Shown: piece by piece, positions 6,600 to 30,414 of the stretch | Layout of the letters: each line of letters starts with the position of its first letter | Position numbering within the stretch: position 1 is the first letter of the stretch | Origin: Euprymna scolopes | Taxonomy: Eukaryota | Assembly (NCBI GenBank): GCA_053919585.1 | Contig: CM132799.1 | Reading direction: 5' to 3' (one strand) | Length of the DNA: 64,000 nucleotides | Translations under genes and position numbers: made by a program | The notes under the pieces: model-generated | The model's input: only the letters and a program-made list of their open reading frames with translations | The model's database searches: none | Told to the model about the DNA's origin: nothing

Positions 6600-7660
6600 C
6601 ACTTCAGACCATTAAATGATGTTTCCATGTAGTTGTTTTATTTGACTTGAGAATATTCCACAACAATTACAACTTACCTGAAACATGCGAAATAAATGAT
6701 GCCTGCATTACTAAGCTGAATTACTACAACATAATACATACCATGCTTGATGAAGCAATAATTATAATTATTCAATTATAATTGCCAATTATCTCCTTAT
6801 AATTACTTCATTATATCATATAACAATTACCTCAATAGCATTACAACATTTCATTTGTCTACATAACTTACTTCATTGCAATTACTTTTCGACAATTCCA
6901 CACATTAAAGTTACGTCAGTACAATTACCGCAAAACAATTTTCTAAGTGCAATTACCTCACTATAATGAAATCACAACAGACACATAATATAACAATTAT
7001 ATCACTACTTTTATCACATCATAATTACCTAACTACAATTATATTATAACTGTCACAATAATGAAATCACAACAGACACATAATATAACAACTATATCAC
7101 TACTTTTACCACATCATAATTACCTAATTACAATTATATTACAACTGGCACAACACGTTTACCATTTGAAAATTGTCTCATAGCAATAACCTTATTATAA
7201 CTATCTAATAATAATTATCACATTACAATGACTTCACTAGAATTACTGCATCACAATTTCGTAAATACAATTTTAACATTACAACTTTTGTCGCTACAAT
7301 TGCTTCATCACATACTCCTATATTTAATTACCGTACAACAATTACTTACCCTCAATTACCACATTACACTTTTCACATTATAGCTATTTCATTTAAAGTC
7401 CACATTAAATTATCCTACCACAATTTTCACATTAAAATTACTTCACTGGATCCACCTCACCACATTATCATGTTATACATATTTCACAACAATTAGCTCA
7501 TTATAACTATCTCACACCACATACCAATTACCTTAATACAATTAGCTCATTATAACTATCTCACACCACATAACAATTACCTTAATACAATAACCTTACT
7601 ACTATCTCAAAATTATAATTACCTCACTAAAATATCATCAATATAATTGTGTACAAAAAC
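6600..7660. repeat. Strand-biased low-complexity region built from degenerate caattac/cattac motifs, with internal duplications
   Basis: G-poor plus strand; near-exact duplications ataatgaaatcac...caattatatt (about 6963 and 7058) and acaattagctcattataactatctcacaccacata (about 7489 and 7538). Confidence 0.7.
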
Positions 7661-19319: not shown

Positions 19320-19831
19320 AGGAAGTGCGAACAAAAACAAGGCCGATAGCCATTAGTCGCGTGCTCTCGTGTAATGAATGAATGCCATGAAATTCTTAAA
19401 GATAAACTAAAATGACCGAAAAATAGGCTGAAATGACTTAAATAAATAAAAAGTAAATGACTTATAATGACTTTAATGAACTTAAGGATGAATTGATGAC
19501 CTTAAGAATGACTTGAATGCTTAAAAAATAACTGAAATCCTTCAAAAACAACTTGAATGATCTGGAGAATGACTTGAATGGCTTTGAGACTGACTGGTTG
19601 TAAAGTGGGTGATCATTTTACATTAAATTCATACAAAAAAGTGATCCCCCACTGTATATCACAAAAATTATTTGATTTAGGGAATTTGAAACGTTATTTT
19701 CGTATTCAGGAACCCCGAAAACCAATAAATAGTGTTATAATAAACATAAAACGAAATAAAAATTACGTGTGTTAAGGACCGACCGACCGACCGACCGACC
19801 GACTTATAGAGTTACTTGCACACGATTAAAA
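19320..19831. mobile_element. Helentron/HINE-like non-autonomous element with internal aatgactt repeats and (GACC)n
   Basis: aacaaggcc...ttagtcgcgtgc near the left end; right end (gacc)n gacttatagagttacttgcacacgattaaaa matches 28690-28752. Confidence 0.5.
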
Positions 19832-19934
19832 CACTATTCTGTGGTATGCATTTAAAAAAATGTCAGTCGGTCGGCCGGTCCGTAACACATTTACTTATTA
19901 GTTACAAACAATGCAGCATCGGTTAAGAACAGAT

Positions 19935-22900
19935 GGTATTTATTTGCTCCCCCACCGAGCAAATTAGGCACAAGGCCAATTTTTAATGTGAGGAGTGAAG
20001 GGAGGGGGAAGGGAAAAGGGGACCAGCTCCCGAGAGGTGGGAAATAGGAGCTGGTTAAAGGTCAGGCATGTGGGGTTGCCCCCACATCTGGTCTTTGCTA
20101 GTCATAGCTAGTCATAGCTTGCAGTATCTGCCGGAACAGATGGTATTTATTTGCTCCCCCACCGAGCAAATAAGGCACAAGGCCAATTTTTAATGTGAGG
20201 AGTGAAGGGAGGGGGAAGGAAAAAAGGGGACCAGCTCTCGAGAGGTGGGAAATGGGAGTTGGTTAAAGATCAGGTGTGTGGGGTTGCCCCCACATCTGGT
20301 CTTTGCTTGCAGTATCTGCCGGAACAGATGGTATTTATTTGCTCCCCCACCGAGCAAATTAGGCACAAGGCCAATTTTTAATGTGAGGAGTGAAGGGAGG
20401 GGGAAGGGAAAAAGGGGACCAGCTCCCGAGAGGTGGGAAATGGGAGCTGGTTAAAGGTCAGGCATGTGGGGTTGCCCCCACATCTGGTCTTTGCTAGTCA
20501 AAGCTTGCAGTATCTGCCGGAACAGATGGTATTTATTTGCTCCCCCACCGAGCAAATTGGGCACAAGGCCGATTTTTAATGTGAGGAGTGAAGGGGAAAT
20601 GGGGACCAACTCCCCGGGGAGTAGGGGAGCTGGATAGTGACAATTGGTATGAAGGGTGGCCCGTACATTGACCAAGGTCTTATATGTGGGGTCGTCCCCA
20701 CATATGGTCTTTGCTTGCAGTATCTGCCGGAACAGATGGTATTTATTTGCTCCCCCACCGAGCAAATTAGGCACAAGGCCGATTTTTAATGTGAGGAGTG
20801 AAGGGGGGGGAGGGAAAAAGGGGACCAGCTCCCGAGAGGTGGGAAATGGGCGCTGGTTAATGGTCAGGCATGTGGGGTTGCCCCCACATCTGGTCTTTGC
20901 TAGTCATAGCTTGCAGCATCTGCCGGAACAGATGGTATTTATTTGCTCCCCCACCGAGCAAATTAGGCACAAGGCCGATTTTTAATGTGAGGAGTGAAGG
21001 GAGGGGGAAGGGGAAAAGGGACCAGCTCCCGAGGGGTGGGAAATGGGAGCTGGTTAAAGGTCAGGCATGTGGGGTTGCCCCCACATCTGGTCTTTGCTAG
21101 TCATAGCTAGTCATAGCTTGCAGTATCTGCCGGAACAGATGGTATTTATTTGCTCCCCCACCGAGCAAATTAGGCACAAGGCCGATTTTTAATGTGAGGA
21201 GTGAAGGGAGGGGGAAGGGAAAAGGGGCCCAGCTCCCGAGAGGTGGGAAATAGGAGCTGGTTAAAGGTCAGGCATGTGGGGTTGCCCCCACATCTGGTCT
21301 TTGCTAGTCATAGCTAGTCATAGCTAGTCATAGCTTGCAGTATCTGCCGGAACAGATGGTATTTATTTGCTCCCCCACCGAGCAAATTAGGCACAAGGCC
21401 AATTTTTAATGTGAGGAGTGAAGGGAGGGGGAAGGAAAAAAGGGGACCAGCTCTCGAGAGGTGGGAAATGGGAGTTGGTTAAAGATCAGGTGTGTGGGGT
21501 TGCCCCCACATCTGGTCTTTGCTTGCAGTATCTGCCGGAACAGATGGTATTTATTTGCTCCCCCACCGAGCAAATTAGGCACAAGGCCAATTTTTAATGT
21601 GAGGACTGAAGGGAGGGGGAAGGGAAAAAGGGGACCAGCTCCCGAGAGGTGGGAAATGGGAGCTGGTTAAAGGTCAGGCATGTGGGGTTGCCCCCACATC
21701 TGGTCTTTGCTAGTCAAAGCTTGCAGTATCTGCCGGAACAGATGGTATTTATTTGCTCCCCCACCGAGCAAATTGGGCACAAGGCCGATTTTTAATGTGA
21801 GGAGTGAAGGGGAAATGGGGACCAACTCCCCGGGGAGTAGGGGAGCTGGATAGTGACAATTGGTATGAAGGGTGGCCCGTACATTGACCAAGGTCTTATA
21901 TGTGGGGTCGTCCCCACATATGGTCTTTGCTTGCAGTATCTGCCGGAACAGATGGTATTTATTTGCTCCCCCACCGAGCAAATTAGGCACAAGGCCGATT
22001 TTTAATGTGAGGAGTGAAGGGGGGGAGGGAAAAAGGGGACCAGCTCCCGAGAGGTGGGAAATGGGCGCTGGTTAATGGTCAGGCATGTGGGGTTGCCCCC
22101 ACATCTGGTCTTTGCTAGTCATAGCTTGCAGTATCTGCCGGAACAGATGGTATTTATTTGCTCCCCCACCGAGCAAATTAGGCACAAGGCCAATTTTTAA
22201 TGTGAGGAGTGAAGGGAGGGGGAAGGAAAAAAGGGGACCAGCTCTCGAGAGGTGGGAAATGGGAGTTGGTTAAAGATCAGGTGTGTGGGGTTGCCCCCAC
22301 ATCTGGTCTTTGCTTGCAGTATCTGCCGGAACAGATGGTATTTATTTGCTCCCCCACCGAGCAAATTAGGCACAAGGCCAATTTTTAATGTGAGGAGTGA
22401 AGGGAGGGGGAAGGGAAAAAGGGGACCAGCTCCCGAGAGGTGGGAAATGGGAGCTGGTTAAAGGTCAGGCATGTGGGGTTGCCCCCACATCTGGTCTTTG
22501 CTAGTCAAAGCTTGCAGTATCTGCCGGAACAGATGGTATTTATTTGCTCCCCCACCGAGCAAATTGGGCACAAGGCCGATTTTTAATGTTTGGAGTGAAG
22601 GGGAAATGGGGACCAACTCCCCGGGGAGTAGGGGAGCTGGATAGTGACAATTGGTATGAAGGGTGGCCCGTACATTGACCAAGGTCTTATATGTGGGGTC
22701 GTCCCCACATATGGTCTTTGCTTGCAGTATCTGCCGGAACAGATGGTATTTATTTGCTCCCCCACCGAGCAAATTAGGCACAAGGCCGATTTTTAATGTG
22801 AGGAGTGAAGGGGGGGGGAAAAGGGGACCAGCTCCCGAGAGGTGGGAAATGGGCGCTGGTTAATGGTCAGGCATGTGGGGTTGCCCCCACATCTGGTCTT

Positions 22901-25900
22901 TGCTAGTCATATCTTGCAGCATCTGCCGGAACAGATGGTATTTATTTGCTCCCCCACCGAGCAAATTAGGCACAAGGCCGATTTTTAATGTGAGGAGTGA
23001 AGGGAGGGGGAAGGGGAAAAGGGACCAGCTCCCGAGGGGTGGGAAATGGGAGCTGGTTAAAGATCAGGCATGTGGGGTTGCCCCCACATCTGGTCTTTGC
23101 TAGTCATAGCTAGTCATAGCTTGCAGTATCTGCCGGAACAGATGGTATTTATTTGCTCCCCCACCGAGCAAATTAGGCACAAGGCCGATTTTTAATGTAA
23201 GGAGTGAAGGGAGGGGGAAGGGAAAAGGGGACCAGCTCCCGAGAGGTGGGAAATAGGAGCTGGTTAAAGGTCAGGCATGTGGGGTTGCCCCCACATCTGG
23301 TCTTTGCTAGTCATAGCTAGTCATAGCTTGCAGTATCTGCCGGAACAGATGGTATTTGTTTGCTCCCCCACCGAGCAAATTAGGCACAAGGCCAATTTTT
23401 AATGTGAGGAGTGAAGGGAGGGGGAAGGAAAAAAGGGGACCAGCTCTCGAGAGGTGGGAAATGGGAGTTGGTTAAAGATCAGGTGTGTGGGGTTGCCCCC
23501 ACATCTGGTCTTTGCTTGCAGTATCTGCCGGAACAGATGGTATTTATTTGCTCCCCCACCGAGCAAATTAGGCACAAGGCCAATTTTTAATGTGAGGAGT
23601 GAAGGGAGGGGGAAGGGAAAAAGGGGACCAGCTCCCGAGAGGTGGGAAATGGGAGCTGGTTAAAGGTCAGGCATGTGGGGTTGCCCCCACATCTGGTCTT
23701 TTCTAGTCAAAGCTTGCAGTATCTTCCGGAACAGATGGTATTTATTTGCTCCCCCACCGAGCAAATTGGGCACAAGGCCGATTTTTAATGTGAGGAGTGA
23801 AGGGGAAATGGGGACCAACTCCCCGGGGAGTAGGGGAGCTTGATAGTGACAATTGGTATGAAGGGTGGCCCGTACATTGACCAAGGTCTTATATGTGGGG
23901 TCGTCCCCACATATGGTCTTTGCTTGCAGTATCTGCCGGAACAGATGGTATTTATTTGCTCCCCCACCGAGCAAATTAGGCACAAGGCCGATTTTTAATG
24001 TGAGGATAAGGGGGGGGGGAGGGAAAAAGGGGACCAGCTCCCGAGAGGTGGGAAATCGGCGCTGGTTAATGGTCAGGCATGTGGGGTTGCCCCCACATCT
24101 GGTCTTTGCTAGTCATAGCTTGCAGCATCTGCCGGAACAGATGGTATTTATTTGCTCCCCCACCGAGCAAATTAGGCACAAGGCCGATTTTTAATGTGAG
24201 GAGTGAAGGGAGGGGGAAGGGGAAAAGGGACCAGCTCCCGAGGGGTGGGAAATGGGAGCTGGTTAAAGGTCAGGCATGTGGGGTTGCCCCCACATCTGGT
24301 CTTTGCTAGTCATAGCTAGTCATAGCTTGCAGTATCTGCCGGAACAGATGGTATTTATTTGCTCCCCCACCGAGCAAATTAGGCACAAGGCACATTTTTA
24401 ATGTGAGGAGTAAAGGGAGGGGGAGGGAAAAAGGGGACCAGCTCCCGAGAGGTGGGAAATGGGAGCTGGTTTAAGGTTAGGTATGTGGGGTTGCCCCCAC
24501 ATCTGGTTTTTGCTAGTCATAGCTTGCAGTATCTGCCGGAACAGATACTACACTTTGATGGTATTTATTTGCTCCCCCACCGAGCAAATTAGGCACAAGG
24601 CCGATTTTTAATGTGAGGAGTGAAGGGAGGGGGAAGGGAAAAAGGGGACCAGCTCCCGAGAGGTGGGAAATGGGAGCTGGTTAATGGTCAGGCATGTGGG
24701 GTTGCCCCCACATCTGGTCTTTGCTAGTCATAGCTAGTCATAGCTTGCAGTATCTGCCTGAACAGATGGTATTTATTTGCTCCCCCACCGAGCAAATTAG
24801 GCACAAGGCCGATTTTTAATGTGAGGAGTGAAGGGAGGGGGGAAGGGAAAAAGGGGACCAGCTCCCGAGAGGTGGGAAATGGGAGCTGGTTAATGGTAAG
24901 GCATGTGGGGTTGCCCCCACATCTGGTCTTTGCTAGTAATAGCTAGTCCTAGCTTGCAGTATCTGCCGGGACAGATACTACACTTTGATGGTATTTATTT
25001 GCTCCCCCACCGAGCAAATTAGGCACAAGGCCGATTTTTAATGTGAGGAGTGAAGGGAGGGGGAAGGGAAAAAGGGGACCAGCTCCCGAGAGGTGGGAAA
25101 TGGGAGCTGGTTAATGGTCAGGCATGTGGGGTTGCCCCCACATCTGGTCTTTGCTAGTAATAGCTAGTCCTAGCTTGCAGTATCTGCCGGGACAGATACT
25201 ACACTTTGATGGTATTTATTTGCTCCCCCACCGAGCAAATTAGGCACAAGGCCGATTTTTAATGTGAGGAGTGAAGGGAGGGGGAAGGGAAAAAGGGGAC
25301 CAGCTCCCGAGAGGTGGGAAATGGGAGCTGGTTAATGGTCAGGCATGTGGGGTTGCCCCCACATCTGGTCTTTGCTAGTCATAGCTAGTCATAGCTTGCA
25401 GTATCTGCCTGAGCAGATGGTATTTATTTGCTCCCCCACTGAGCAAATTAGGCACAAGGCCGATTTTAATGTGAGGTAAAAACCAGCTCCCCTAAAAGTA
25501 GGCAAAAAAGGGTACTCTGGTTACCAAAAATAATAATTTTCCCAGTATAGAGGGTTTCCCCTCCATTGACTGGTACAAATTATCTTAAGTGCAGCATCTG
25601 CCTGAACAGATGGTATTTATTTGCTCCCCCACCGAGCAAATTAGGCACAAAGCCAATTTTTAATGTGAGGAGTGAAGGGAGGGGGAAGGGAAAAAGGGAC
25701 CAGCTCCCGAGAGGTGGGAAATGGGAGCTGGTTAATGGTCAGGCATGTGGGGTTGCCCCCACATCTGGTCTTTGCTAGTCATAGCTAGTCATAGCTTGCA
25801 GCATCTGCCTGAACAGATGGTATTTATTTGCTCCCCCACTTAGCAAATTAGGCACAAGGCCGTTTTTAATGTGAGGTAAAAACCAGCTCCCCTAAAAGTA

Positions 25901-27547
25901 GGCAAAAAGGGGGCACTCTGGTTACCAAAAATAATAATTGTCCCAGTATAGAGGGTTTCCCCTCCATTGACTGGTACAAATTATCTTAAGTGCAGTATCT
26001 GCCGGAACAGATGGTGTTTATTTGCTCCCCCACTGAGCAAATTAGGCACAAGGCCGTTTTTAATGTGAGGTAAAAACCAGCTCCCCTAAAATGGGTCACT
26101 CTGGTTACCAAAAATAATAATTGTCCCAGTATAGAGGGTTTCCCCTCCATTGACTGGTACAAATTATCTTAAGTGCAGTATCTGCCGGAACAGATGGTAT
26201 TTATTTGCTCCCCCACTGAGCAAATTAGGCACAAGGCCATTTTTAATGTGAGGTAAAAACCAGTTCCCCTAAAAGTAGGCAAAAAGGGGGCACTCTGGTT
26301 TCCAAAAATAATAATTGTCCCAGTATAGAGGGTTTCCCCTCCATTGACTGGTACAAATTATCTTAAGTGCAGTATCTGCCGGAACAGATGGTGTTTATTT
26401 GCTCCCCCACTGAGCAAATTAGGCACAAGGCCGTTTTTAATGTGAGGTAAAAACCAGCTCCCCTAAAAGGGTCACTCTGGTTACCAAAAATAATAATTGT
26501 CCCAGTATAGAGGGTTTCCCCTCCATTGACTGGTACAAATTATCTTAAGTGCAGTATCTGCCGGAACAGATGGTATTTATTTGCTCCCCCACTGAGCAAA
26601 TTAGGCACAAGGCCATTTTTAATGTGAGGTAAAAACCAGCTCCCCTAAAAGTAGGCAAAAAGGGGGCACTCTGGTTACCAAAAATAATAATTGTCCCAGT
26701 ATAGAGGGTTTCCCCTCCATTGACTGGTACAAATTATCTTAAGTGCAGCATCTGCCGGAACAGATGGTATTTATTTGCTCCCCCACTGAGCAAATTAGGC
26801 ACAAGGCCGTTTTTAATGTGAGGTTAAAACCAGCTCCCCTAAAAGTAGGCAAAAAGGGGGCACTCTGGTTACCAAAAATAATAATTGTCCCAGTATAGAG
26901 GGCTTCCCCTATACTGACCGGTACAAATTATCTTAAGTGTAGTATCTGCCGGAACAGATGGTATTTATTTGCTCCCCCACCGAGCAAATTAGGCACAAGG
27001 CCGATTTTTAATGTGAGGAGTGAAGGGAGGGGGAAGGGAAAAAGGGGACCAGCTCCCGAGAGGTGGGAAATGGGAGCTGGTTAATGGTCAGGCATGTGGG
27101 GTTGCCCCCACATCTGGTCTTTGCTAGTCATAGCTGCAGTATCTGCCGGAAGAGATGGTATTTATTTGCTCCCCCACTGAGCAAATTAGGCACAAGGCCG
27201 TTTTTAATGTGAGGTAAAAACCAGCTCCCCTAAAAGGGGTCACTCTGGTTACCAAAAATAATAATTGTCCCAGTATAGAGGGTTTCCCCTCCATTGACTG
27301 GTACAAATTATCTTAAGTGCAGTATCTGCCGGAACAGATAGTATTTATTTGCTCCCCCACCAAGCAAATTAGGCACAAGGCCGATTTTTAATGTGAGGAG
27401 TGAAGGGAGGGGGAAGGGAAAAAGGGGACCAGCTCCCGAGAGGTGGGAAATGGGAGCTGGTTAAAATTCAGGCATGTGGGGTTGCCCCCACATCTGGTCT
27501 TTGCTAGTCATAGCTAGTCATAGCTTGCAGTATCTGCCGGAACAGAT
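19935..27547 (-). repeat. Head-to-tail array of 38 structured non-coding units (26 type A, 4 type B, 8 type C) inserted in a U2 snRNA 5' fragment; putative non-autonomous site-specific retroelement
   Basis: Units start (plus strand) ggtatttatttgctcccccac(c/t)gagcaaattaggcacaaggcc...aatgtgagg and end gcagtatctgccggaacagat. B units at 20528, 21744, 22535, 23737; C units at 25419, 25819, 26013, 26196, 26390, 26572, 26766, 27157. The flanks rejoin to aagaacagat|actacactttgatcttagcc, the reverse complement of the U2 5' region. Confidence 0.9.
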
Positions 27548-27576
27548 ACTACACTTTGATCTTAGCCATGTGGCCA
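27540..27576 (-). pseudogene. U2 snRNA 5' fragment (stem I and branch-point recognition region)
   Basis: Minus strand ggccacatggctaagatcaaagtgtagtatctgttc versus the metazoan U2 consensus GGCCTTTTGGCTAAGATCAA(A)GTGTAGTATCTGTTC; the remainder (atctgttctta) is displaced to 19924-19934 by the array. Confidence 0.9.
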
Positions 27577-27799
27577 ACGAAAAGTTACATTTTGGACAAG
27601 TTTCAGAAAAGTCTAATTGATAGGTAAAACATTTATGGAGGAAACAGTGTGATTATTTGCAATTTTGGTACATTTTTACCCCCTTATGAGCCTCTTGGAA
27701 TGCTGAATATCAGTTACAATGGACAAACTATGCAGTTTTACACCGTAACACATGTATATTTGACTTCAGCACCATGGGAGAGAACTATATAGATATACA

Positions 27800-27880
27800 T
27801 TTTTTTTTACACAGTGATCACCACTTATCAAGGCCCGGAAGCCACTCAGGAATAAGGGTTATTGCAAGTACAAGTACAAA
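27800..27880 (-). mobile_element. Very short 3' tail of the CR1/L2-type LINE
   Basis: T-run then caccacttatcaaggcccggaagccactcaggaataagggttattgca, matching about 14240-14285 and 56950-56985. Confidence 0.8.
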
Positions 27881-28249
27881 CGGTGCAGTTTCACACCTTA
27901 ACACATGTATTTTTACATTCAGCAACATGCGGAACCACTATATAGACATATCAAGTTTTTGTTGAGAAATATGAGAAACGCGCCAGAAGAAAGGGCGTTT
28001 TCAGTACAAAACATCCCAGTGGGATGCAAACCAGACGTTTACCAGGATCACTCATACTGAATTTATATTAAGTACAATGCCCTCCACATTTTGGGCTAGT
28101 TTCAGAAAAATCTAATGGATGGATCAAATGTCACGGGGCAAAAAGTGTCATTTTGGGCCATTTTTTATCGCTTTTGAGATGGAGTGCTTTGCATGCGACT
28201 AAAAATGCCTTAGCATGGAAGGGTTTTCCCTTCCATTGCCAAGGAACAG

Positions 28250-28678
28250 TTACAAACGTAAGTACAGCATCTATTAAGAACAGATACTACACTTTGGTAT
28301 TTATTTGCTCCCCCACTGAGCAAATTAGGCACAACGCCGATTTTTAAAGTGAGGAGTGAAGGGGAAATGGGGACCAACTCCTCGGGGAGTAGGGAAGGGG
28401 GCTAGTGACAATTAGTAATAAGGGTTGCCCCTACATTGGCCAAGGTCTTATCTGTGGGGTCGCCCCCACATAGGGTCTTTGCTTGCAGTATCTGCCCCGG
28501 CAGATACTAAACTTTGATCTTAGCTATGTGGCCAAGGAAACTTTACAAACATAAATACAGCATGTAGTAAGACAGATACTCAATTTGATCTTGGCCAAAA
28601 GGCCAAGACAAGCTTACAAAGCTAAGAACAGCATCTATTAACAACAGACCTTTGATCTTAACCAAAAAGGCCAAGCAC
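28250..28678 (-). repeat. Three tandem ~65-70 bp repeats each containing a U2 5' fragment; the first is interrupted by a solo unit
   Basis: Unit acaaa...cagcatctattaagaacagatactacactttgatcttagccaaaaggccaag; copies at about 28250-28295 plus 28501-28540, 28545-28612 and 28615-28678. Confidence 0.85.
28296..28505 (-). mobile_element. Solo type-B unit inserted in a U2 fragment
   Basis: Same ends as array units but more diverged; flanked by cagatactacacttt (left) and cagatactaaacttt (right). Confidence 0.85.
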
Positions 28679-30414
28679 AAAAGTGTTATAGACAGACCGA
28701 CCGACCAACGGACCGACGGAGTGACTTATAGAGTCGCTTGCACGCGAGTAAAAAGGAAATCAGGAAAAAAAAAAACACCACGTGCTCGGAGGGAGACCAA
28801 AATCTACGTCGAAGAAGAAAATGGATATGTGGTCGGAGAAGAAACGTGTTCGGTGAGCTAGATGGACGAAAGAAGCAAGATACTTTTAAAGTGATGTCAA
28901 GACGGGAAAGTGTGATAAATACTTTGTTAAAACAGAAAAAATGTGGACTCGGATTTTCATTTATTTCTTCACTTTTTTATTTTTATTTATTACTAAAGAC
29001 AAGTGTAACTTCATGTAATGTTACATAATACTTATTTTGGTAGACGTGACCAGGCATTTACTCATAAAAGGGACAATATAAAGAAAGAAGAAAGAAAAAC
29101 AAACGTTTTTACGGAAAAATGCAACTGCAAAAGAAATTCGCCCGAGAGTGCAAAACTTTGAAATAAAAAGAATAGGATATTGCACAAGTTGGTGAGTCAC
29201 TTGTTTGCTTTTTTCTGCTAATTTTCGAATTTTTCTTTGTCTTTTCAGTAATATTTACTTGTTTTGGGGAGACGTTGGTTATGCATAAGGAATATTGTTT
29301 CATACTCATTTTAACATAACAAATAGCTTGTATTGTTTTAGAGACGAATTTACAACTCATTTTGACTGGAACAAATTTTTGAAGTTTGTTTTTGGACTTG
29401 TTTTTTAAACTCCTGTTTTATTGTTATGAATTACTAAAGTTTAAAATTAAAAGAAAAATGGTGGATATTTTGCAAAATTGGAATAAATGTTTAAACAATT
29501 ATAACGTGTGAAAAGCAAATATAAGTACTAAAGTAAGTCCTAAGAAGTTACAATAAGTGTAACTTTATTTCTATAAAGAGTAGTAATTATATTTTAAGCT
29601 TATGGGTTGTTTATAATTTACTGTTAATCCTGGCATTGTGAAAAATGATTAAATATCAACATGTATTTATTTTTATTCATTTATTTTTATTTATTTATTT
29701 TTTTACAAAGAACCTGAAAAAATGCACGTTCTTTTTAGCTGAGCAACTTACAAATACTTTTATTTTATTTGCGAACTTTTCACCGGGTCTTGTGCTTTTG
29801 TTTGTCGTTATTTTACTGTTTGTCGATTTAGATAAATACATAAGACTGGAATATTAAAACCTAAGTAGTTTTAATTTTGAAATAAAGCAAGACTGCATGA
29901 CGTCAGATAGGACACTTGACATGAAGGAAATTATTTTTTAACTTAAACTCTTTATGACGATAAGGGGCTACAGCTTGCATTGTCGTTATTGTAGAAATAT
30001 AAATGCCTACTATATATTTGGGATGCGCGCAGTCCTCGATTATAGAAATAGAAGATGTAAACAGCGACAATTTTTTCCTGTAGAATTCGGATAGCGTATC
30101 AAATTTCCAGAGTATGTACGTGAACTTATCATCGGAAGTGAGTCATTACACTTTTGTTGATCGGTTCACAAACAAAGCAGCTAAGAGAATAAGGGAATAA
30201 ATAGTAGTGAATGAGTATACAGTGTTCGAATTAGGTGCTTCATGATAACGTTAAACTTTACTGTGACACGAAAAAGAGAAAATGCAATAAGTGTTGTATA
30301 ATGTTGATTAAAACGGACGTCTTTTCAATTATTAAATCATTCCTCTCTGATAAGTTTATTAGAGTATTCGTTCATAGGCAAAAATAAGAAGCTCACAGTA
30401 TTAGTGCTAGAGTT

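Follow-up and report, generated by a model that had tools for sequence, protein, structure and literature searches.

The 64,000-nucleotide (nt) stretch of the Euprymna scolopes genome analysed here (GenBank assembly GCA_053919585.1, contig CM132799.1; hereafter the window) carries at positions 19935-27547 an array of 38 short repeat units, stacked at one precise point of a sequence that resembles the 5' part of U2 small nuclear RNA (snRNA). The question raised by this locus is whether a fragment of a U2 gene was hit repeatedly by short U2-targeting elements, as an initial annotation of the stretch had proposed, or whether the units and the U2-like sequence around them share another history. 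We consider it probable that the units are mini-retroposons which are mobilised by a group of long interspersed nuclear elements (LINEs) with an apurinic/apyrimidinic-type endonuclease (APE), which carry their own U2-derived target and which have stacked in nested landing pads, with subsequent duplication of blocks of units.

A scan for the tail motif of the units delimited 38 head-to-tail copies of 182-222 bp in a single orientation, with their sense strand on the minus strand. Tandem Repeats Finder (TRF) reported a matching array in the window, with periods of ~194-221 bp and higher-order periods of 376-430 bp, and the count and limits first annotated were thereby reproduced. When sorted by body sequence, the units fall into three families, A (26 units), B (4) and C (8), which, as had been described, have their ends in common. 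In all of them the order is ATCTGTTC, followed by CGGCAGATACTGCA (together a common 22-nt 5' end), a family-specific body, and a common tail of 58-59 nt, which contains AATAAA and finishes in ..GAGCAAATAAATACC. On the minus strand, the array is preceded by ..ggctaagatcaaagtgtagt, the end of a U2-derived head (positions 27548-27585, about U2 nt 1-37, delimited with Rfam and by comparison with the genuine gene), and is followed by atctgttctta, the downstream remainder of the target (19924-19934, U2 nt 38-48). Excision of the array rejoins a U2-like 5' sequence, with the joint between nt 37 and 38 inside the branch-point-recognition box, in agreement with the first reading of the flanks (U2 positions follow human numbering throughout; the U2 of E. 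scolopes has one extra A, which shifts its own positions by +1). As determined by the tail scan and clustering, units 1-22, of families A and B, make up the 3' part of the array (19935-24349), and units 23-27 are variants of family A (24350-25418). Units 23, 25 and 26 start 13 nt deeper in the U2 head (ATCAAAGTGTAGT plus ATCTGT..), which fits either a join deeper in a head carried by the RNA or a nick at nt 25/26. The 5' part (units 28-38, 25419-27547; TRF and clustering) holds eight family C units among three of family A and is built as a two-unit (183/194 bp) higher-order repeat. All of these features lie on the minus strand. No open reading frame (ORF) of at least 200 amino acids was found in the window.

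The window comes from a 5.9-Gb assembly, and the genome-wide counts given below are exact matches in that assembly. A 15-nt sequence of the tail has 62,707 exact copies, compared with 3 for the reversed control, and chance is therefore excluded. In 44,487 cases (71%), the tail is followed directly by an exact ATCTGTTC (U2 nt 38-45), a junction within 1 nt of the one used by the U2-targeting LINEs Keno and Utopia; this bears out the earlier proposal that the units are non-autonomous retroelements with a precise insertion site. In line with this, 89% of 294 tails examined in detail lie at the nt 37/38 site, and the flanks of copies elsewhere, which the initial annotation had singled out as a check, are mostly U2-site flanks and not random ones. 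Tails that lie off the site are mostly found further 5' inside the same head: 13 of the 294 adjoin (A)TCAAAGTG (nt 25-27), and a few adjoin the very start of the head. None of the 294 adjoins genuine U2. A pair of units at one locus (L029) occupies a non-U2, poly(A)-adjacent site with ATCTGTTC on either side of the insert, which suggests that the target is determined mainly by the octamer 3' of the nick, and that this octamer is mostly sufficient.

With regard to abundance, the first 16 Mb of contig C1 contain 100 exact tails, which form 39 loci of 1-11 units each; by extrapolation, we estimate the number of loci genome-wide to be of the order of ten thousand. The 38-unit stack is thus in the upper tail of array sizes, and a multi-family array is the normal state at thousands of loci and not peculiar to the window. 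Family A gave at least 632 candidate matches on many chromosomes, and the 43 scored full-length matches have identities of 97-100%, unit 1 having matches at 100%. A search for heads with G or T after CTGCA returned 1,771 matches, the first 100 of which are point variants of A, B and C.

The nature of the U2-like sequence itself was assessed against the Rfam U2 model, which matches positions 27422-27586 (minus strand) with 35.8 bits, compared with a gathering score of 46, so that the flanking fragment falls short of a full-length U2 gene; the true alignment is confined to the first ~45 positions. Stem-loop I has an altered loop (ggccacatggc, compared with ggccttttggc in the genuine gene), the sequence upstream is unrelated, and beyond nt 48 the window sequence no longer resembles U2. 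On the minus strand, atctgttctta leads into non-U2 sequence, namely the body of an older repeat unit with a U2 head (..accgatgctgcattgtttgtaac), a body type that recurs behind U2-like heads at 28240-28295 and 28500-28680. The head with its continuation is seen again 700 bp away and as a ~71-bp tandem. In one of these heads, a solitary family-B-like unit (28296-28504, minus strand) has its tail next to aaagtgtagtatctgttctta, a junction nearer to the 5' side of the head, at about nt 29/30. Directly adjacent, at 28505-28680 (minus strand), are ~2.5 tandem units of ~71 bp, each consisting of a U2-like head (about nt 5-45) and a ~28-nt spacer, an arrangement analogous to the U2_sat of Ciona (PMC4640811); these heads are potential additional landing sites.

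Comparison with other loci pointed in the same direction. A further 29 array loci begin with a U2-like head, and the DNA 5' of the head is unique in each case. Many of these heads have in common a ttcggg loop that is absent from the genuine U2 gene, and such changes are family-specific. Furthermore, two loci (L038 and L036) contain units in which a complete head (about U2 nt 3-45) stands directly after an earlier tail and before unique DNA. On their 3' side, many arrays run into a fourth, older short family, D, which is ~165 bp long, non-coding and has a diverged tail; this sequence had been considered as the 5' untranslated region (UTR) of an autonomous element, a candidate that was rejected once it was recognised as D. 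At four independent loci, target-site duplications (TSDs) of 9-15 bp surround the whole composite of head, A/B/C array, and D body and tail, and uninterrupted ('empty') heads contiguous with D also exist. These TSD-flanked composites and empty heads indicate, therefore, that U2-headed retroposons were scattered first and that younger A/B/C units entered their heads later. With complete-head units in A/B/C and TSD-flanked copies of D, all four families have the make-up of short non-coding retroposons with an snRNA-derived head, similar to the SINEU elements discussed below. Membership of the head in a family with its own termini and TSDs is largely shown for D, and not formally for the repeat type of the window. 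Judged by its sequence, the U2 piece in the window would be neither a U2 gene nor a pseudogene but the head of an older member of this retroposon superfamily.

Genuine U2 genes were located with a marker spanning nt 38-66, which has 1,179 matches genome-wide, mostly within a 764-bp tandem on contig C9. This very large tandem array of U2 snRNA genes lies at about 168.87-169.13 Mb (G000:C9), and its 764-bp periodicity is broken by inserts of 7.1-7.6 kb with ORFs in the U2 sense. The LINEs assigned to this system form two families, labelled LINE-1 (loci L052, L053 and L056) and LINE-2 (L051 and L054); L052 and L053 are found at G000:C9:168917500-168927100 and 168945500-168955100, and L051 at C9:168875600-168885599. 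LINE-1 encodes an ORF1 of 751-766 amino acids and an ORF2 of 1151 amino acids; its 3' end meets U2 at nt 1 (L052) or nt 6 (L054, L056). In LINE-2, ORF1 (887 amino acids, L051) contains a zinc knuckle, ORF2 has 1145 amino acids (L051), and the 3' junction is at about nt 22-25 (L051, L054). Several copies in the U2 array have open ORFs. A complete U2 copy, beginning with nt 1, lies behind the insert of L052, so that the coding sequence on this side is intact but stands ~7 kb away from the promoter region upstream; in L051, the downstream U2 restarts at about nt 22-25. The 5' junction, U2 1-45 joined to TCAGTGC, is the same in both families and occurs 107 times genome-wide, with about 10 copies in the U2 cluster and the others dispersed, often as tandems 6.5-8.4 kb apart.

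ORF2 of both L052 and L051 contains the Pfam domains Exo_endo_phos, RVT_1 and zf-RVT, the first being an N-terminal APE. The L056 ORF2 aligns colinearly with human L1 ORF2p across residues 6-865 (E 1e-62), and R2 proteins match the LINE ORF2 over the reverse transcriptase (RT) only. By domain content, these LINEs are of the APE type, apparently L1/Tx1-like, and Keno-like in lifestyle. The APE domain and the colinearity with L1 therefore exclude Utopia, which has a C-terminal restriction-like endonuclease (RLE) and no APE, for the LINEs found, and leave room for a partner of RLE type for A/B/C. The earlier alternative of Utopia or Keno was accordingly narrowed: APE-type LINEs inserted in sense in genuine U2 genes speak for a Keno-like type, with the reservation that the Keno 3' junction at U2 nt 38/39 is not that of LINE-1 or LINE-2 and is matched, within 1 nt, by A/B/C.

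These results bear on the first alternative to be weighed, namely that a resident U2 gene or retropseudogene fragment was hit repeatedly by short derivatives of Utopia or Keno, the U2 piece being host sequence. This possibility draws on the rejoining of the flanks at the known Keno/Utopia site (PMC4640811) and on the fact that genuine U2 genes of this species do bear site-specific LINEs. However, the U2-like piece is limited to about nt 1-48, is altered in its loop, and runs into a repeat body that recurs 700 bp away; heads elsewhere are family-specific variants in TSD-flanked retroposons; and the LINEs found are APE-type and not RLE. We therefore regard a host origin of the U2 piece as unlikely, and the flank, initially annotated as a U2 snRNA fragment, is better described as the U2-derived head of an older mobile element, in view of its changed loop, the unique DNA upstream of such heads, and the TSDs.

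How the stack of 38 units was formed was addressed by clustering at 98.5% identity, which yielded 21 clusters in the order abcdefgbcdebcdhfabcdifjkllkmnopqprstpu. A block b-c-d(-e), with units of 188/198/210(/~196) bp, occurs four times (units 2-5, 8-11, 12-15 and 18-21), and the six-unit pattern of units 1-6 is repeated at 17-22; identity between block copies and within clusters is 99-100%. Since near-identical blocks recur in this way, roughly half of the 38 units are the product of block duplication after insertion, and the array of the window, inside one head, can be put down to about 20 founders together with one block present in four copies. Arrays at other loci also contain higher-order repeats (3589 bp and 979/5982 bp). 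The notion of repeated insertion at one site hence holds for the site specificity of the units, but not in the sense of 38 separate events.

End-to-end template jumping has been described for the R2 enzyme, and arrays might likewise arise in one step if an RT jumped between short RNAs and left a mixed-family concatemer at each insertion. Such a process would account for the exact tail-to-head joins and the mixing of families within arrays, as well as for the rare tails joined to the very start of the head, as expected of a jump at the end of a full-length RNA; moreover, a template jump has been discussed for SINEU heads (PMC4494074). Nevertheless, it would require most RNAs to start exactly at U2 nt 38, lone units are found in the heads of LINEs and D elements, and much array growth is demonstrably block duplication. 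In addition, the end of an array is nearly always a resident ATCTGTTC leading into an older element, so that site targeting is needed anyway, and we judge one-step formation improbable. That the array is an ordinary satellite, with a U2-derived repeat amplified by unequal crossing-over or slippage and spread by recombination without any retrotransposition, is hardly credible in spite of the higher-order repeats in the window and at other loci, as the initial annotation also held, given 62,707 copies at an estimated ten thousand loci at least, dispersed over all large contigs with differing family orders, precise 3' ends together with 5'-truncated units, TSDs, and head and tail modules in common with coding LINEs.

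The preferred reading, mobilisation of the short units by an APE-type LINE group, rests on the comparison of both kinds of element. A box of 14 nt, GGCCTTGTGCCTAA, is common to the LINE 3' UTRs and the short-element tail, and the local alignment score of a LINE 3' UTR with family A was 47, compared with 24-26 +/- 4 for shuffled sequences (z about 5). The predicted folds of the LINE-1, LINE-2 and short tails are alike, each combining a small hairpin at the box with a terminal stem-loop and an end, ..TAAATA.., that is left unpaired; the predicted terminal stem-loop is long in the LINEs and has 7 bp in the short units. Among LINE-1 copies, paired changes keep this predicted stem (tatcgg/ccgata and ttacgg/ccgtaa). 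Moreover, at L056 a family C unit sits in the head between two LINE-1 copies.

Several observations weigh against this reading. No short units were found inside genuine U2 genes in the ~65 kb sampled, and the LINE 3' junctions (nt 1 or 6, and about nt 22-25) differ from the nt 37/38 junction of the short elements. The similarity of A/B/C to the LINE 5' UTRs was no higher than that of shuffled controls. Two exclusion-pattern searches of the genome for a LINE bearing the identical 59-nt tail returned only mutated short units and arrays. In place of the autonomous element with a common 3' end that the initial annotation had called for, these searches and the reading of the U2 array gave LINEs with the head and tail modules and none with the identical tail. 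Lastly, no discrete 5' or 3' transcript ends were seen in the RNA-seq data, in which reads fall on both strands. Taken together, LINE-1 and LINE-2 are relatives and not proven partners of the short elements, and we infer that the partner lies within this LINE group.

As for candidates for a longer element, tails preceded by C or G gave 337 matches, among which a tail pair 3.6 kb apart was considered as a LINE and rejected, being a higher-order repeat of short units. Similarly, tails without an A-run before the box gave 24 matches, among which a tail spacing of 5,982 bp was rejected as a LINE and proved to be an array that includes a 50-bp mini-unit.

At the RNA level, poly(A) RNA-seq reads as well as transcriptome contigs were found for both strands of the units; unit-to-unit junctions occur in reads and contigs of independent RNA runs (joints 27546>28295 and 28495>27330). 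Transcription of the array is shown only within longer RNAs, with no element-specific transcript demonstrated.

From these data, A, B and C belong to a single superfamily of short non-coding retroposons, 50-220 nt in length. A full-length element consists of a U2-derived head (about nt 1-45, ending in ATCTGTTC), a short inverted target copy (CAGATACTGCA), a structured body that is specific to the family and the 59-nt tail. The inverted target copy and the head are predicted to form an 11-bp hairpin (z = -5.5), and the tail a small GGC-loop-GCC hairpin and a terminal stem-loop, with an unpaired ..TAAATACC end. The AATAAA of the tail is probably not a working poly(A) signal, because it is unconserved in LINE-1 (AAATACA in L052) and in D, and because no A-tails are seen at the junctions. 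An HDV-like (hepatitis delta virus) or hammerhead ribozyme at the 5' end was also considered and is not supported, as no ribozyme family was matched in the window with Rfam at E<=1. At the gathering score, Rfam gave no match in the window at all, and at E<=1 it gave only partial U2 matches and a spurious mir-341 on a (GACC)n hairpin.

In one locus (L057, G000:C19:41765400-41773500) there are mini-units of 50 bp (e.g., at 927-976), composed of ATCTG, an A and the tail from the box onward; the array around them has more than 45 units, and they have been copied along with it as part of a higher-order repeat. This tail-only mini-unit looks like a 5'-truncated retrocopy and is a candidate for the minimal mobilisable RNA.

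Within the account that we favour, copying would proceed by target-primed reverse transcription, with the machinery supplied by the APE-type, Keno-like LINE group that has the same head and 3' module and that resides both among the tandem genuine U2 genes and in tandems dispersed elsewhere. The bottom strand would be nicked just 5' of ATCTGTTC (U2 nt 37/38), and priming would take place on the tail, possibly aided by read-through RNA ending in the next ATCTGTTC, which is complementary to the nicked strand. The 5' end would be joined via homology, as the RNA carries ATCTGTTC and often more of the head, and cDNA of the head could pair with the target. Such homology-based joining would therefore leave a fresh copy of the target on both sides of every insertion, and it would also explain why the nt 45/46 boundary is common to LINE-1, LINE-2, A-C and D despite their differing 3' junctions. 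As landing pads, the older U2-headed D elements and the 71-bp head-plus-spacer repeat would have spread by ordinary insertion with TSDs of 9-15 bp; younger A/B/C units would then have stacked inside these heads, and unequal exchange would have duplicated blocks of them.

The closest published parallel is provided by the SINEU elements and Tx1-Mar LINEs of crocodilians (Kojima 2015), in which the heads derive from U1 or U2 and the target is a Mariner family; some Tx1-Mar LINEs, of the Keno group, bear SINEU-type heads, and SINEU copies are frequently found in tandem, 'sandwiching a TSD' (PMC4494074). Both systems consist of short non-coding retroposons with an snRNA-derived head and of partner or related LINEs, some in crocodilians and both families here with that head, and in both, insertion is specific to a target in another mobile element and tandem copies occur. 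By contrast, the target is Mariner in crocodilians and lies here within the element's own U2 head; insertion therefore recreates the target, and stacks grow to dozens of units from several families. The two systems, likened here by description, also differ in host, the present one being a mollusc, and in age, with 85-91% identity in crocodilians compared with 97-100% here, which marks the E. scolopes elements as young.

Keno is an APE-type, U2 snRNA gene-specific LINE of the Tx1 clade (Kojima and Fujiwara 2004, as cited in PMC4640811 and PMC4494074), and has been reported from vertebrates, lancelet and cnidarians and not from molluscs. The LINEs found here resemble it in their APE and RT domains and sense insertion in genuine U2 genes, and the short elements do so in their 3' junction, within 1 nt of nt 38/39; on the other hand, the present LINEs join U2 at nt 1-6 or about nt 22-25 and also form dispersed tandems outside U2 genes. 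Utopia, an RLE-type, U2-targeting element of the NeSL clade, shares with Keno the 3' junction at which U2 resumes at nt 39, occurs in tandem in Nasonia, and has relatives (YURE) that enter a U2-derived satellite (PMC4640811). It has the target site and the occasional tandem insertion in common with the short elements, but carries a restriction-like endonuclease in place of the APE found here, and no RLE element turned up.

The initial annotation had also brought up the R2 SIDEs as a precedent. These are non-coding R2 derivatives that keep the 5' and 3' ends required for processing and RT binding and insert at the site of the parent element. The likeness lies in their being non-coding, site-specific derivatives; unlike the present system, however, R2 is RLE-type, targets 28S rDNA and has a 5' ribozyme, whereas the target here is U2-derived, the related LINEs are APE-type and no ribozyme family was matched in the window at E<=1. 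Full-text literature searches returned no account of U2-headed or U2-targeting short retroposons in molluscs, nor of multi-family stacks of this kind. The system combines two published themes and adds self-targeting, the carried head being itself the target.

Some further features were recorded around the array and among relatives of the LINEs. A (GACC)n tract with ..cttatagag..cttgcac.. occurs in the window at 19777-19831 and 28699-28753, in the same orientation and with 84% identity over 55 bp. The two copies bracket the whole U2-head region, the left one lying within a (GACC)n/(GGTC)n hairpin (19759-19896) that accounts for the weak confusion with mir-341 in Rfam; on the basis of this layout, the flanked region may be a larger host repeat that bears U2-like heads. 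An unrelated short repeat at 27790-27881 reaches ~2,100-fold depth in RNA run X24, with reads that extend into a T-run before 27800; this suggests an abundant element on the minus strand that resembles short interspersed elements and has a poly(A) tail. Among database homologues of the LINE ORF2, the most abundant (P0002, ENA ERZ21867824) has 732 members at 62% identity and is present as full-length copies arranged head to tail with a 6.82-kb period. A further two homologues, L058 and L059, belong to different organisms and also differ in their targets, and neither contains U2 or box motifs; in the APE-type LINE L058, ..acctgtgaactgcgtgtctt.. is found at both flanks (about 780-800 and 7370-7395), suggesting a different sequence-specific target in that species.

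Site-specific LINEs are usually restricted to multicopy RNA genes, and their non-autonomous derivatives, such as R2 SIDEs and SINEU, are rare and poorly understood. In E. scolopes, a single assembly contains a young and very abundant system (~62,700 units) together with the coding LINEs in U2 genes, the short derivatives and their landing pads, which extends U2-site-specific APE-type LINEs and snRNA-headed retroposons to molluscs. A bolder interpretation, which we advance tentatively and hold to be possible rather than probable, is that the superfamily has internalised its own integration site: the octamer in the head, which every element would carry whether it codes for protein or not, would be nicked by the superfamily's own APE endonuclease; this would have allowed an escape from the U2 niche and a rich-get-richer growth of mixed-family stacks at an estimated ten thousand loci or more, with the U2 array largely spared by the short elements. 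The system thus offers a natural test of how a target-specific element may escape its niche by carrying the target along, of the recognition of a minimal 3' RNA module (box hairpin and terminal stem-loop), and of how retrotransposition and unequal exchange jointly build satellite-like arrays. If the account proposed here is true and the 50-nt tail-only unit was mobilised, this unit would represent a very compact RNA signal for a site-specific LINE of the APE type.

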